Shown here one piece after another: positions 49,794 to 62,198 of a stretch of DNA of 64,000 nucleotides. Within the stretch, counting starts at the first letter, position 1, and each line of letters begins with the position of its first letter. The stretch is taken from positions 358,140 to 422,139 of the forward strand of contig NW_019218006.1 of assembly GCF_002571385.2 (NCBI RefSeq). Reading direction: 5' to 3'. Source of the DNA: Stylophora pistillata. Taxonomy: Eukaryota. Under the pieces are notes generated by a model, which was given only the letters and a program-made list of their open reading frames with translations, did no database searches and was not told the DNA's origin. Both the position numbers and the translations under genes were made by a program.

Positions 49794-52172
49794 TCACCAG
49801 TGACAGAGAGCGTGACTCCAAACAATCCCTATGGTCAAAAATAAGTTGACTTGACTGAATTCTGTTGTTGATGCCGTTGATGATGTTCTGATGTTTTTCC
49901 ACGATGTCCCTCTAATGTTTATTTGAGTGGTACTTGTTCTGGTGGCGGAAAAAGTACATCGCGATGGGACAAGGTTATGTGATGACGTCATAGGTGTAAC
50001 AAGCGTAAAAGGCGAATTGTTAACTATAGCAGGAGAGATAGTAAGAAAAAAAACAGATCAAAAACAGAGACAAAATGATCTGGCAAGGAATGAGAGAAAC
50101 GAGTTGAATTAAAAAATTTCAAGGTCAGAATTTCAAAAGCTTTTTCCTTGGAGTCGAGGTATTGTTTGACATGCAGGCGACGGCTGCCATTTTCTGGAAA
50201 TAAATGGCGTCTGTTATAAAGAGAGATGTGTATTTCAGCCCCACAGTTATGCCCTCACTTTCCGTCCAATTCCTTCCACAATGACACACGATCATGGTCT
50301 ACCTCGCAAACTTTCTCAGTGAGGGTTTAGAAAAGGAAGTATTTTGGTGAATTATCCCACGTTTAACCTAACACCCAGAGGGCCTAATTTTTTAGGCGAA
50401 GTTCTCTGGAACGGTAAGTCCTTTTTGCATAGCGATTGGAGATTTGCTCATCGTCAGAGTGAACTAATGGTTCTGTACTGAAGCTTAATGACATACAGTT
50501 GCCTTCTGAATCATAAAACCACTAGATTGGAAAAAAACGCACAAAAGGTACAAAGAGTTAGAGAATAGAATCAGTAAACTAGGTGGATGAACTAAGGTGT
50601 CGGTAAAAATGTGGTGCACTCACGTGAGAGTGAATTCTAAGGTTACCTCGGAACATAGTTAGTAGAGGGGGAATTAAAATTAATCTACCTCACAGTTTCA
50701 GGGGAAGCCAACTTGTGTCAACTTACCACACTGCTTACAAGTCAGCGGGCACTGCTTCTTCATGTTAGGATAATCACAATATTTTGCGTTTTCGGGACAA
50801 TTCGACAAATGATCTTGACACAGAGCTTCTGTCCTATCGCCTACAAAGGGGAAATTAAGGATTATCACCGCTGTGCAACTAGAGGAGAATCTATGGGGTC
50901 TTGGAAAGGAGGCATGTTAGCCACAAAGCTCTTTCGTTAAGGGCCTCTTCTGGTTTAAGGATTTTTATCGCTGTAAATCTTATTACTTAGAGTTCTTACA
51001 AGAGGTTAGACAAAAATAGAGGAGATTTTAGGATTATAGGGGGAGTACGAAAAAATATGGCTGGGAATTCTGCTCGCAAGGAGATGTTTTTAATGTAATA
51101 AAAGTAACTTGTCTCAACGAAGTCGTTCCTTTGAAAAATTAAGGATTTCAGGGGTACTCTTGCTTTATGTAAAACAAACACACAAAAAAAAACCAGTTAT
51201 CTAATTATGCAACGACAGCAATAGGAAGCCGCGCTTGAGTATCATTGCAAAGCGGGATATAACAACAGAAATTTCACCAATTGGAGCGCATTTCGTCCAC
51301 AGTTAAAATTGAACCCTTAATAGGGTTTCTATCGTTTGCTTCGCGTTCTGTACCGGTTAAATTGTTATCATTGCGTTGACAGGTATATCAATGATGCGAG
51401 TTTTGACAGCGGTAAGGTTATGTGTCTTTTATAAGTAGCCTTTCTGATCTGATTATAGAGTAAACAGGCGTTTGTTTAGTAATAAACAAAACAAAAAAAG
51501 ATAAATGTATTTTAAGCATAAATTCATCTCGATCGAGATAACATAAAAGCTCTCAGTCATTTTGGCTCCAGGTGATTGATATTTCTAACGACTAACTACA
51601 AAAGTATTCTACATTTTTACTATTAAGAGCATAATTCAATTATTATGTATGTTATGAGTAGTTTGTCGATTTTGAAACCCAAAAACTCTCAGCTCATGCC
51701 ACTAAACGCAAATCTACAGGAAAATGCTTTAAGACGGGACAAAAAAAAAAGAAAAACACAGTTTGGTGCAATTTGTGATTTTCAGAAACATTTCGTTTAA
51801 CCCTAGCGAGGGATGTAGTTCAGAAATACTCTCCACTTTTTCATTAACACATTGAATAAAGTCATAAGAAAGAGACAACTTTTTCCCGACTTGAAATCTT
51901 GACAAAAAGCTCGAGAAAGCCGTACGATAAGTTGCTGCGATAATTTATCTTCAGATCAGTTCTACGATCAAATCCTCATCTTAAGTAAGAAAGATTTTAA
52001 AAAGGGGACAGACCGACAGAAGACTTATGTGTGGAAAATAAGCTCAAGATGCTCTACAGAACTGTTCATGGGTAATTTTGTGGTAAGTAATTTGTTACAA
52101 ACCTGCCTGTACTTGTCGACTTAGAGGGTGAATAAGGAATATTACGAAGAAAGTCCATTGCGAAAAATCCAT
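49794..52172 (-). CDS. ShKT-domain surface protein B: signal peptide + ShK domain + Ser/Thr stalk + hydrophobic (GPI-signal-like) C-terminus, ~137 aa
   Basis: Exons 52172-52103 (MDFSQWTFFVIFLIHPLSRQVQA), 50840-50727 (GDRTEALCQDHLSNCPENAKYCDYPNMKKQCPLTCKQC) and 50023-49794 (VNNSPFTLVTPMTSS...VNLFLTIGIVWSHALCHW*). Both introns are GT-AG, phase 1. AATAAA at 49730-49725. Confidence 0.75.
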
Positions 52173-52589
52173 GAATGCGGTACTTCCGTTGAAGGTCAAG
52201 TTGGCTTGGTGTGTTACTATTCTATTTTGAGCCGAAATTTCCCATTTAAGAATTCATGGGGAGTATCATATTTCGAAGGGGTAAATAAGTGTATCGAGGC
52301 GCATGATAGCCTGGGTCTCACGTGGTTGCCAAGCCAACGTTCTTCCTGATCGATACACCCTTCTGCCTCGCCTTGTCTTCAGTGACACGTCGTTTACAGT
52401 TCTTTAACTCTCGGAATAAATTGAAACGTAACTTCTTCTAATAACATCGATTTATTTTCAAGAAAACAGATGACGAGAATTGATAAACTCATCTGCTGAA
52501 CGGTGGTTTGCTTACATATTAGTAAATTCGCTATGAAACTAATCCATAGCACAATTACGGGTGAGCTTTGAAAGAAAATGTAAAAATTA

Positions 52590-61000: not shown

Positions 61001-62198
61001 ACATTGTATACCTGACAACATAAGGTCTTGAAATGGTTGAAATGTTCTCAATTCCTGAATATACAGCAACTGCGAAATGAGATCGGTTAACTTCTCCCTA
61101 CAAAACACAAACTTGAAGACTGATTCAGAGCAGAAAGAAAGGTAATAAAAGATATTCCGATTTATTGATAGCAAGCCATTTTGATATGAATTGTGGTTCT
61201 TGTCTCTAACGTTATTCGTTTTCAAAAAACTTAATCTTTTCTTCGATACTGTTGAACTCTAGATATGCGAGCCTACCAGAGAAATCCACAGACAACATTA
61301 TGTATGCAAGGTAGGGTCTTGTTGGTGTCTTTTGCAGTTACACTCAATCAATTCTGGTTTTATTTTGAGGTGAAGAGAAATAATTATCACAGGAATGATA
61401 AGGGGTGCTGTACTGCATGCTCCTTTTAGCTTCATACATTTTTTTAAATCTGCAAAGCCACTCTAATCATGCAAATTACGAATACCTCGAGCTTTTCATA
61501 TATTTCAGCTCGGTATATCTGGATGGACATCATGGTGCTGAAATTTTGGTGTCATGCTATCCACCTTACCATCCAACCGGCTCCGGCCGCGCCCATGTTT
61601 GAAAAAAACTCAACAATTTACTTGTCTTTTTATCTTATCTTTTTTGCTCCTAGCATTACCGAAGAAAAGAATATTTCTTGTGTGTCTGGTAACATCAACC
61701 ACGTGTATGACAGGTGAAGTGAATTTTCAAAAATTATATCTCTTTTAACTTAATCATTTTGAACGGCATAAAATGAAAAACGATGTAAAATAAAAAACGA
61801 TTTAAAACTGTTTTGAACGATGGACAAACCTCATCTTTTATAAGAATAGCAAGACAGTCGCTGGTTTGAACTCATCAGTAGCAAAGAACGAAACAAATGG
61901 ACCTAGCTTTACGCAAGGAAACTGAAACGAAACCAACCGGTCATAACCGATAATGACTTTTGGTATTTGGGTTTTACTGCCGATAAGATTATTGCAAAAC
62001 TGATCGATTAGTTGTCAAAAACCAGACCTATGAGACTCGACAGACAAGCAAATCCACAGTGAACTGTTATGATGACGACCACTTCCGCTCTATAGGACCA
62101 ATTTAAGTACATTGCTTCACTCTTTGTCTGCAACTGGGACCTTCTTATTTCTAATCTTATATATATTTTTTATCTTCTATTGCATCAGATTGGTGTGA
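58080..62198 (+). CDS. Type-I membrane protein: signal peptide + Cys-rich domain (GnT-V/MGAT5 C-terminal-like) + P/T stalk + TM + tyrosine-motif tail, ~300 aa
   Basis: Exons 58080-58158 (MLLPCEKSICLITAFLLVGGTRTTAT), 59410-59733 (10 Cys, NCDSVC...C...RRLCPC), 59918-60176 (stalk, TM VLIVLAVIAAVLALCLLGLAVLFM, stop-transfer RNKRK), 60852-60974, 61263-61310, 61654-61713 and 62189-62198. Phases are consistent. Exons 2-3 are strong; the first exon and last two are tentative (a stop at 61715-61717 is an alternative end). Confidence 0.7.
58939..59025. mobile_element. 87-bp hairpin MITE with a perfect 9-bp TSD
   Basis: TIRs caacctcgttcccagggtctctcatcttccc and gggaagatgagagaccccgggaacgaggttg; ACGCGAAGT at 58930-58938 and 59026-59034. 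Confidence 0.93.

Follow-up and report, generated by a model that had tools for sequence, protein, structure and literature searches.

The 64,000-nt stretch of Stylophora pistillata DNA analysed here (the window) contains two small neighbouring ShK-domain genes, ShKT-A and ShKT-B, that adjoin an unrelated membrane receptor gene found across corals. The best reading of the locus is that it holds two unrelated gene units, a tandem ShK pair and a receptor with a GnT-V-like domain, which most likely became neighbours through the chance of genome layout; we put the probability of this reading at about 0.6. The first-pass annotation of this DNA had proposed a co-regulated functional module of three surface proteins, and that proposal is left without support. 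The gene structures on which it was built largely hold (Table 1), with the qualifications that ShKT-B is a prediction and that the first exon of the receptor gene is placed by orthology.

Table 1. Coordinates of the genes, exons and intergenic features, numbered from the first nucleotide of the window.
Feature	Position	Strand	Remarks
ShKT-A gene	54819-53403	minus	three exons
ShKT-A exon 1	54756..54819	minus	start codon and signal peptide, 64 nt, ends phase 1; equals N-terminus of XP_022794897.1
ShKT-A exon 2	53962..54066	minus	ShK domain, 105 nt, phase 1-1; AG/GT sites; equals RefSeq protein
ShKT-A exon 3, coding part	53403..53860	minus	S/T/P-rich stalk, GPI-signal-like hydrophobic C-terminus, stop
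ShKT-B gene	52172-49794	minus	three exons, predicted
ShKT-B exon 1 (predicted)	52103..52172	minus	start codon and signal-peptide-like segment, 70 nt, ends phase 1
ShKT-B exon 2	50727..50840	minus	ShK domain, 114 nt, phase 1-1; AG/GT sites
ShKT-B exon 3 (predicted)	49794..50023	minus	S/T-rich stalk, weakly hydrophobic C-terminus, stop 49794-49796
Intergenic stretch between diverging start codons	54820..58079		3260 nt
Young high-copy dispersed repeat, ~286 bp	56611..56896		inside intergenic stretch
Receptor gene	58080-62198	plus	seven exons
Receptor exon 1, coding part	58080..58158	plus	start codon and signal peptide, 79 nt, GT donor, phase 1
Receptor exon 2	59410..59733	plus	Cys-rich ectodomain, GnT-V C-terminal-domain-like, 324 nt, phase 1-1
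Receptor exon 3	59918..60176	plus	S/T/P stalk, transmembrane helix, basic stop-transfer
Receptor exon 4	60848..60974	plus	two acceptors, 60848 and 60852
Receptor exon 5	61263..61310	plus	48 nt, phase 2-2; YASL motif and start of second tyrosine motif
Receptor exon 6	61654..61713	plus	60 nt, phase 2-2; ends second and begins third tyrosine motif
Receptor exon 7	62189..62597	plus	last two codons, stop 62196-62198, 3' UTR to at least 62597

ShKT-A is an expressed gene. The exons of the model are all bounded by GT/AG sites, with phases 1, 1-1 and 1, and the product is that of RefSeq XP_022794897.1 (LOC111333562, 208 aa); exon 3 alone matches this entry (P0001) at 100% over 151 aa. The same 208-aa protein is encoded by eight Logan contigs of 1382-1405 nt, which must be spliced because the reading frame is interrupted in the genome. 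The ShK exon matches PF01549 with E=8.5e-6 (26.7 bits, at 53963-54064 on the minus strand), and the protein ends in a 19-aa hydrophobic window with a mean KD of 1.47, followed by two residues; the Pocillopora orthologue likewise stops inside its hydrophobic segment. All detected relatives belong to Stylophora and Pocillopora (Pocilloporidae), but the query was the fast-evolving stalk exon, so absence from other families is weak evidence.

The model of ShKT-B encodes 137 aa, with canonical splice sites and the same phases as ShKT-A, and its exon 3 is in frame after an AG acceptor. Exon 1 is the top-ranked complete candidate (ATG, hydrophobic segment and phase-1 donor) between 50848 and 53400, and the two proteins start alike, with MD..FF. 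The ShK exon matches PF01549 with E=1.7e-7 (32.1 bits, at 50728-50847 on the minus strand); the C-terminal 19-aa window has a mean KD of 1.31 and is again followed by two residues. No Pfam family was found for the last exon, and a search of a 5.8-billion-protein collection, using exact 5-residue words and proteins of 48-152 aa, gave no matching protein (one candidate, none scored). Since no database protein matches this exon, ShKT-B stays a prediction, and there is a sizeable chance, somewhat short of even, that the gene does not work as modelled and is either a silent relic of duplication or the source of an ShK exon that belongs to another transcript. The unmatched last exon speaks for this, when set beside the RefSeq entry and transcript contigs of ShKT-A, although a search confined to exact words and a limited length range sees only part of what might be there. 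On the other side, the ShK exon keeps its six cysteines and has a better Pfam score than its ShKT-A counterpart, and none of its six splice signals departs from the canonical form, the phases agreeing throughout. Moreover, the two ShK domains are visibly less alike than the ShKT-A domain and its Pocillopora orthologue are when aligned by tblastn, which suggests an old duplicate with exons that have stayed open.

Both ShK exons lie where the first-pass annotation had put them and pass the PF01549 cut-off of 20.9 bits, and when the window was searched in all six frames, the six-Cys pattern turned up in these two exons only. They are also each other's closest ShK exons in the S. pistillata genome, which has at least 146: the best non-self match of the ShKT-A exon is the ShKT-B exon (56% identity, E=7.2e-4), and the next reaches only 36% (E=0.078). 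The two genes would form a tandem pair, each encoding a signal peptide, a single ShK domain and an S/T-rich stalk prone to O-glycosylation, and their products may be mucin-like glycoproteins, tethered or shed, with an ShK knot at the tip.

How such proteins might be held at the surface is suggested by their C-termini. GPI-anchored proteins are marked by a signal peptide, a weakly hydrophobic C-terminus without cytoplasmic residues, and a cleavage site of small residues upstream. The ends of ShKT-A and ShKT-B read as putative GPI-attachment signals, as judged from their hydrophobicity and position. Their KD values are low against the receptor helix, which reaches 3.25, is followed by 12 residues and has a basic stop-transfer after it, and small residues lie just upstream of both hydrophobic ends. 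Of the membrane anchors originally assigned to all three products, the transmembrane helix of the receptor stands; the two ShK proteins would have GPI-signal-like ends rather than membrane-spanning anchors.

Channel-blocking ShK toxins are short secreted peptides with a functional Lys-Tyr (Lys-aromatic) pair and expression in venom or cnidocytes. With 208 and 137 aa, a stalk and a tether, the products described here fall outside the class of ShK-type K+ channel-blocking toxins. The loop expected to carry the dyad has R-Y in ShKT-A and K-K in ShKT-B, so that a Lys-Tyr pair is not evident, and sequence analysis of the window genes revealed nothing that links the pair to venom or cnidocytes. The proteins could serve as components of a surface or mucus coat, or as tethered modulators of a channel in the same membrane. 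Tethered ShK mucins would mean that the ShK domains of corals are not only venom peptides.

The structure of the receptor gene is documented largely by RNA. Five joints (59733/59918, 60176/60848, 60974/61263, 61310/61654 and 61713/62189) occur in one 1063-nt polyA-RNA contig from run X4 that extends to 62597, and two joints, 60176/60852 and 61713/62189, were found in run X12 of a second study. The joint between exons 1 and 2 was seen in none of four RNA runs, and exon 1 is therefore assigned from orthology only (54% identity over 28 aa to the N-terminus of the Pocillopora verrucosa protein). All told, the RNA check called for in the first-pass annotation bears out the joints of receptor exons 2 through 7 and the splicing of ShKT-A, and leaves the exon 1-2 joint and ShKT-B without confirmation.

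Two acceptors, 4 nt apart, are in use at receptor exon 4. Splicing to 60848, as in the X4 contig, shifts the frame into a stop at 60882-60884 and gives a tail-less product, while splicing to 60852, which is found only in an X12 contig that also reads through the next donor, stays in frame and yields the tyrosine tail. The choice between them would decide whether S. pistillata makes the tail. Every receptor exon maps in the 60852 frame when orthologues are aligned by tblastn, and exon 5 is 82% identical to its Pocillopora counterpart.

No S. pistillata protein appears among the nine database matches to the receptor, and no raw reads fell on its exons in run X24 (of which about 6% was read); expression is thus low, and the gene may be in decay in this species. 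In such a case, the beginning of exon 4 would have undergone a net change of 2 nt that broke the ancestral frame, leaving the tail as a remnant and most transcripts frame-shifted. The Pocillopora equivalent of acceptor 60848 does read on in frame, whereas S. pistillata meets a stop after 11 in-exon codons, and the frame-shifting acceptor is carried by the deeper contig (13.2, as opposed to 3.65), though contig depths are no measure of isoform ratios. That said, loss of function is unlikely: the 60852 frame is open through exons 4-7 to the C-terminal end of the Pocillopora protein, exons 4 and 5 have 72-82% identity to that protein, all three tyrosines are retained, the ectodomain keeps all of its cysteines and is 86% identical, and acceptor 60852 does occur in an RNA contig.

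The ectodomain of the receptor is encoded by exon 2, which is single copy in the genome and has 56 relatives at E<=0.001. It has no direct Pfam match at E<=1, and a PDB profile alignment to residues 409-508 of the MGAT5 chain, in which the cysteines of the shared core line up, has an E of about 0.8 and is not significant, so any link to GnT-V is transitive. The relatives provide that link: 26 of the 45 aligned match PF15024, and in six of ten checked individually the match falls at profile positions ~470-557 of 557. One of them, P0022, is found by exon 2 at E=3.4e-12 and itself scores 33.9 bits against PF15024 (cut-off 28). A profile of the receptor family also matches, colinearly and at E<0.1, four of the eight exon loci of the genome's own GnT-V genes, and among 1525 control frames a single one reaches such a score. 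On this transitive evidence, the ectodomain is taken to be a diverged relative of the Cys-rich C-terminal accessory domain of GnT-V (MGAT5), and would descend from that non-catalytic domain. Membership of glycosyltransferase family 18 (PF15024) does not follow, as there is a single 107-aa exon whose relatives match only the end of the profile; without a GT-B catalytic domain, the receptor is not a glycosyltransferase. In GnT-V, the accessory domain spans residues G628-L741 (PMC6107550), and the available parts of two papers give no function for it (PMC6107550, PMC11328876).

Among 1965 candidates, nine proteins are related to the receptor at E<=0.001, and eight of these are full-length and were aligned. 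Named orthologues come from Pocillopora verrucosa, Oculina patagonica, Orbicella faveolata, Porites lutea and P. harrisoni, and P. lobata and P. evermanni are further members of the cluster, so the family spans robust and complex corals. The receptor would be a Scleractinia-wide type-I membrane protein with a signal peptide, an ectodomain of 8-10 cysteines and a stalk ahead of a single transmembrane helix, beyond which lies an acidic tail about 80-120 aa long. The claim of a tyrosine-motif tail is supported, as all eight aligned orthologues share three tyrosines and a D-G-L motif without exception. The ectodomain would bind an extracellular ligand, possibly a glycan, and the tail tyrosines may serve in phosphorylation and SH2 docking, in YxxPhi sorting, or in both. 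Exon 2 did not vary among the few receptor RNA contigs aligned, and to that extent there is no sign of hypervariability.

The tail was compared with two known signalling classes. The ITAM consensus is YxxL/I-x(6-8)-YxxL/I, and the spacer has 9 residues in S. pistillata and Pocillopora, which places the receptor outside this class; a pair with 8-residue spacing is found in only two Porites sequences among the eight orthologues, and the first tyrosine has L at +3 in only two of the eight and reads YxxM in three. The second tyrosine fits the ITIM consensus, [IVLS]-x-Y-x-x-[IVL], in S. pistillata and half of the orthologues (4/8), but not in three Porites sequences or P0061.

The tyrosines might instead be sorting signals, and the protein a sialomucin-like cargo receptor, similar to endolyn/CD164 or TGN38, that recycles or is directed to lysosomes. 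There is some indication of this in the Y-[DE]-R-L found at or beside the C-terminus of S. pistillata and five of eight orthologues, which has the form of the YxxPhi sorting consensus, in the mucin-like stalk, and in the weak hit that one orthologue (P0007) gives to MGC-24, a sialomucin family (E=0.0034, short of the Pfam cut-off). Yet three invariant tyrosines in so long an acidic tail exceed what sorting requires, and the motifs are arranged as YxxL-x8-YxxL in two Porites paralogues and YxxL-x9-YxxI/V in the Pocilloporidae. A role purely in sorting is a possible but doubtful account, and sorting and signalling are not exclusive.

It remains to be asked what, if anything, connects the receptor with the ShK pair. 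All three genes do appear to encode glycoproteins that are secreted or sit at the cell surface, and the three S/T/P-rich stalks first described are real, with S+T+P fractions of 0.37 (ShKT-A), 0.48 (ShKT-B) and 0.35 (receptor) compared to a mean of 0.20 and a 95th percentile of 0.31 in 100 control open frames. The common exon plan, however, says nothing about partnership: a phase-1 signal exon, a 1-1 module exon and a mucin-like stalk are the standard design of shuffled extracellular modules. Genes that share a bidirectional promoter start within about 1 kb of each other, in divergent directions, and show correlated expression; the ATGs of ShKT-A and the receptor are 3261 nt apart, in line with the ~3.3 kb first given, so on start-codon distance the genes do not make such a pair. 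The intervening DNA is unique in the genome apart from the dispersed repeat; 41 of the 44 matches listed for the stretch cover query positions 1778-2080, at 92-98% identity and on other contigs (775 first-look candidates, 40 scored).

The head-to-head arrangement, with signal peptides and membrane tethers on both sides, is what suggested that the tail-less ShK proteins might be ligand-binding or co-receptor partners of the adjoining receptor, co-regulated from a shared 3.3-kb upstream region. In P. verrucosa, the contigs on which the orthologues of ShKT-A and the receptor are recorded have an identical length, 23,802,514 bp, and are presumed to be one and the same; this is too coarse a measure of local linkage. 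Such a partnership is nevertheless quite improbable, given the generic exon plan, a gap that exceeds typical bidirectional promoters and holds a recent repeat insertion, and the differing spread of a receptor family across Scleractinia versus ShKT-A relatives in Pocilloporidae only. An ShK neighbour is itself unremarkable, because there are so many ShK exons in the genome. Six metagenome contigs, each at most 5.4 kb, carried no ShK motif. Nothing was found to show that the ShK genes and the receptor work together, and on that negative ground the cluster is probably an ordinary genome neighbourhood.

Corals lack well-defined surface receptors for recognition of symbionts, pathogens and self. 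This single-copy, Scleractinia-wide type-I receptor, whose tail has three invariant tyrosines, offers a concrete and testable candidate. Its ectodomain is otherwise known only as an accessory domain of GnT-V, and its existence hints that the C-terminal domain of that enzyme is an independent binding module. A far bolder view, and a long shot, would make it an undescribed class of anthozoan receptor, a GnT-V-derived glycan sensor of microbes, symbionts or neighbours with three ancient signalling tyrosines, toggled in Stylophora by the 4-nt acceptor choice between a signalling form and a tail-less decoy, and with the GPI-tethered ShK mucins as partners in cis.

Several known systems resemble these proteins in part. 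Among GPI-tethered modulators of ion channels are the toxin-like lynx1/Ly6 prototoxins, which would share with ShKT-A and ShKT-B a toxin-fold knot on a lipid anchor (putative in the coral proteins) and offer a mechanism for channel modulation within one membrane, though their fold is three-fingered rather than ShK. Nematodes have surface coat proteins that combine mucin and ShK segments, the Toxocara TES-120/MUC family. Caenorhabditis elegans MUL-1 is likewise described, in the part of the source available, as a small ShKT protein (PMC13273113). The likeness to these nematode proteins lies in a six-Cys ShK domain, a presumably O-glycosylated S/T-rich segment and a signal peptide; the coral pair differs in its single N-terminal ShK domain, its GPI-signal-like C-terminal tail and its cnidarian host. 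Endolyn/CD164 and TGN38 resemble the receptor in having a mucin stalk, a Cys-rich module, a single transmembrane helix and a C-terminal YxxPhi, whereas the acidic tail of the receptor is far longer and has two more invariant tyrosines; the only sequence hit is the sub-threshold MGC-24 match of P0007, which does not establish homology. The Hydractinia Alr family, cnidarian receptors with ITAM/ITIM-like tails (10.1101/2022.03.04.482883), would appear from the available portion of that work to be comparable in that its members, from a colonial cnidarian, are type-I membrane proteins whose tails contain tyrosine motifs; the coral ectodomain is not immunoglobulin-like, and ITAM spacing is not conserved across the receptor family. 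With GnT-V itself the receptor appears to share the same Cys-rich module, its core cysteines aligning with those of the human enzyme, but here the module stands alone on a cell-surface stalk.

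The ShK-domain stalk genes ShKT-A and ShKT-B lie on the minus strand, and a seven-exon gene for a type-I membrane protein with a tyrosine-bearing tail, here termed the receptor, lies on the plus strand. As a by-product, the checking of this trio yielded what appears to be a coral-wide receptor family built on the accessory domain of GnT-V (MGAT5). The genome background comprised 397.6 Mb in 5513 contigs, within which the window is G000:C223:358140-422139, and spliced models were queried one exon at a time or by way of natural database proteins.

Features of the window, with positions in window coordinates
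Feature	Position	Strand	Remarks
ShKT-A exon 1, signal peptide	54819-54756, 64 nt	minus	phase 1, GT/AG sites
ShKT-A exon 2, ShK	54066-53962, 105 nt	minus	phase 1-1, GT/AG sites
ShKT-A exon 3, stalk, hydrophobic end and stop	53860-53403	minus	GT/AG sites
ShKT-B exons (predicted)	52172-52103; 50840-50727 (ShK, 114 nt, phase 1-1); 50023-49794	minus	canonical sites, 137-aa model
Receptor exon 1	58080-58158, 79 nt	plus	from sequence, phase 1
Receptor exon 2	59410-59733, 324 nt	plus	from sequence, phase 1-1
Receptor exon 3	59918-60176	plus	from sequence
Rhodopsin-family GPCR, intronless, 313 aa	29999-30940	minus	PF00001, E=1.1e-28
Reverse-transcriptase fragment, retroelement remnant	36032-36475	minus	PF00078, E=3.1e-11

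A search of the 64-kb window for the six-cysteine pattern in all six frames returned two ShK-like stretches of the minus strand, 53963-54058 and 50728-50820, and the translations of both ShK exons match the ShK profile PF01549 (26.7 and 32.1 bits; cut-off 20.9). The 208-aa ShKT-A product is the RefSeq protein XP_022794897.1 residue for residue, and the gene anatomy proposed in the first-pass annotation was exact to the base. The stalk exon is 100% identical to that protein, which identifies the window as DNA of the stony coral S. pistillata. Eight Logan contigs, each about 1.4 kb long, encode the same protein; since introns break the ShKT-A reading frame in the genome, these contigs are spliced transcripts. 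An orthologue of 201-202 aa, 60% identical, is present in Pocillopora damicornis and P. verrucosa. Further relatives did not emerge with the stalk exon as query (2 proteins among 30 candidates); the stalk is fast-evolving, so that missing relatives elsewhere constitute weak evidence. In the window's own genome, the stalk query matched itself only. The main text of the S. pistillata cell atlas presents ShK toxins solely as cnidocyte products and gives no gene-level data (PMC8162421).

The best non-self match of the ShKT-A ShK exon in the genome is that of ShKT-B (56% identity, E=7.2e-4, among 10 candidates), followed by one of 36% identity at E=0.078. The two exons are therefore each other's closest relatives in the genome and the genes tandem duplicates, with stalks that can no longer be aligned. 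Between the ShK genes, the top complete exon-1 candidate for ShKT-B that combines a start codon, a hydrophobic segment and a phase-1 donor is 52172-52103; the scan also gave a higher-scoring match at 53107 and, for the 52172 start, a variant of shorter length. The anatomy originally drawn for ShKT-B, with its canonical splice sites, is that of a plausible predicted gene. Its last exon matched no protein of 48-152 aa in a word-indexed collection (1 candidate, none scored). A direct search assigned no Pfam family to its stalk.

All three stalks are rich in serine, threonine and proline, at fractions of 0.37 (ShKT-A), 0.48 (ShKT-B) and 0.35 (receptor) versus a control value of 0.20 from 100 frames. 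Both ShK proteins have only a weak hydrophobic segment: the best window of 19 residues has a mean Kyte-Doolittle value of 1.47 in ShKT-A and 1.31 in ShKT-B. In each it lies just after small residues and 2 residues short of the C-terminus, and the Pocillopora orthologue of ShKT-A likewise terminates within the hydrophobic segment. The score of the receptor helix is 3.25, and a basic stop-transfer sequence and then the tail come after it. We infer that the C-termini of ShKT-A and ShKT-B are putative GPI-attachment signals.

The ShK genes and the receptor had been proposed to form a functionally coupled, co-regulated cell-surface unit, a view that drew no support from any analysis run. Shuffled extracellular modules generally share such an exon plan. 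There are at least 146 ShK exons in the genome, including a further one on the same contig (G000:C223:432567-432674, plus strand, 39.7 bits), about 10.4 kb past the window end and downstream of the receptor. The 3260-nt intergenic stretch between the diverging genes is unique in the genome save for a repeat of about 286 bp (56611-56896) that is present in many copies of 92-98% identity (775 first-look candidates) and resembles a young SINE or MITE insertion. Rfam gave no match across 49000-64000. The range of the receptor family far exceeds the detectable range of ShKT-A. Six coral metagenome loci showed no ShK motif or ShKT-A-like start, and at 1.2-5.4 kb all six are too short to decide on synteny. 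The sole positive hint for the unit is that the P. verrucosa orthologues of ShKT-A and the receptor are both recorded on a contig of 23,802,514 bp, the records being taken as one contig.

To the left, the ShK genes are bordered by about 10 kb of repeats with assembly gaps within (38686-48576). Open frames in this stretch were rejected as genes: the sequence consists of tandem short repeats, in which several frames of either strand are open.

RNA runs containing this DNA are labelled coral metagenome or organism A, and four of the runs were mapped on 57500-63400 to follow the receptor transcript. The polyA run X4 yielded one contig of 1063 nt that carries the joints 59733/59918, 60176/60848, 60974/61263, 61310/61654 and 61713/62189 and reaches 62597, and run X12, from another study, yielded the joints 60176/60852 and 61713/62189. 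The random-primed run X5 gave unspliced pieces only, and no raw reads on receptor exons were found in the roughly 6% of run X24 that was read. The joint between exons 1 and 2 was not seen in the four runs over this interval, and an X4 contig (59313-59494) crosses the acceptor of exon 2 without splicing. Exon 1 has the support of 54% identity, across 28 residues, with the N-terminal end of the P. verrucosa protein. A search with the Pocillopora orthologue returned 9 matches, none from S. pistillata, so the receptor seems to be missing from the protein set of the species within the length range searched. No papers were found for the four gene and protein identifiers searched.

Two stretches of very high RNA depth, 58288-58484 and 58879-59075, were rejected as exons, since they are fragments of repeats and both ends of each are loose. 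The deep pieces of intron 1 (58306-58361 and 58936-58969), with summed depths between 10^3 and 10^5 in each of the four runs, are parts of repeats carried in many abundant transcripts, and the second falls within a 39-nt inverted repeat (58937-58975 / 58989-59027, 95% complementary).

Exon 4 of the receptor has two acceptors, 60848 and 60852, which lie 4 nt apart and are each used in an RNA contig of a different run. The difference is not an alignment ambiguity, as the two joints, found in separate runs, span 671 and 675 nt. Splicing to 60848 shifts the frame to a stop at 60882-60884, giving a tail of about 20 residues, while splicing to 60852 leaves an open frame across three small phase-2 exons to the stop at 62196-62198; the supporting contigs have depths of 13.2 (X4) and 3.65 (X12), which are no measure of isoform ratios, and the X12 contig also reads through the next donor. 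That distal stop had been predicted as the receptor end, and the in-frame isoform reproduces it to the base. In Pocillopora, the equivalent of 60848 is read in frame and the proteins are two residues longer there. The start of exon 4 in S. pistillata therefore differs by a net 2 nt, for which the use of 60852 compensates. Read from 60852, exon 4 shares 72% and exon 5 82% identity with Pocillopora, and the protein has the same C-terminal residues, which argues that the long tail is the selected product. The choice between acceptors 4 nt apart thus settles whether the S. pistillata receptor carries its tail, for whose exon 4 a direct search found no Pfam family.

A search of 1.84 billion proteins with the ectodomain exon retrieved 56 cluster representatives at E<=0.001, of which 24 reach 1e-10 and 6 reach 1e-30; within the window's own genome, the query found itself only. 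Full-length orthologues, annotated as uncharacterized or hypothetical, occur in Pocillopora verrucosa (LOC131797904), Oculina patagonica (LOC144632769), Orbicella faveolata (LOC110065969), Porites lutea and P. harrisoni. Porites has two receptor paralogues on one contig (database proteins P0063, P0064 and P0143); the protein accessions follow directly on one another in P. lutea, and the P. harrisoni loci are tagged 004286 and 004290. An additional stalk segment of about 49 residues is optional among the isoforms of LOC131797904 (P0059, P0065-P0069), which also vary in their last exons: these retain, truncate or substitute the C-terminal residues past the last tyrosine motif. An allorecognition role for the receptor was rejected, as exon 2 is without variants in the RNA contigs, a very small sample.

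An alignment of 8 sequences shows no variation in the ectodomain cysteines, in a D-G-L motif or in three tyrosines of the tail, and the label of tyrosine-motif receptor given at first pass is a fair one. The first tyrosine sits in YxxL in two of the eight (Pocillopora), in YxxM in three and in other contexts in three, S. pistillata having YxxL. The second conforms to [IV]-x-Y-x-x-V in 4/8 and reads I-x-Y-x-x-I in S. pistillata, and the third forms a C-terminal Y-[DE]-R-L in 5/8, with two models cut short there and one bearing P at that position. Motifs 2 and 3 of S. pistillata cross splice junctions, and its motifs 1 and 2 are separated by 9 residues (30-40 in other genera), one more than the maximum spacer of the ITAM consensus. 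Two Porites sequences have an additional YxxL 8 residues ahead of the last one. Given such variable contexts and spacing, ITAM receptor is a label that these sequences do not establish.

What is the ectodomain? No direct Pfam match was obtained at E<=1. When 45 aligned sequences (the exon itself and 44 relatives) were scanned singly, 26 matched PF15024, the Glyco_transf_18 profile, with a best E of 1e-8; among 10 relatives checked individually, 6 matched at profile positions ~470-557 of 557. One relative, the database protein P0022, is found by the receptor exon at E=3.4e-12 and scores 33.9 bits against PF15024 (cut-off 28). Searched against the PDB, the family profile matches human MGAT5 at a non-significant E of about 0.8, spanning the whole domain with the cysteines of the Cys-rich core lined up. 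The genome also contains several true GnT-V genes (45 exon matches), and the family profile matches four of eight GnT-V last or second-to-last exon loci at E<0.1, colinearly; as a control, 1 of 1525 window frames scores as well. The GnT-V (GT18) copies lie at C103:647000-726300, C317:243900-265400 and C197:289800-308200, with apparently several within 80 kb on C103, and several of their exon matches hold stop codons.

A search for literature on the GnT-V C-terminal module as a stand-alone domain found none; the one paper found for the PF15024 family concerns how N-glycosylation evolved. In the enzyme, this domain comprises G628-L741 and holds 5 of the 8 disulfides (PMC6107550), and the available portions of two accounts give no function for it (PMC6107550; PMC11328876). 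Outside the enzyme, the module stands alone in Actinia tenebrosa, where it sits on a stalk whose end is GPI-like, and is fused to EPTP repeats in Nematostella.
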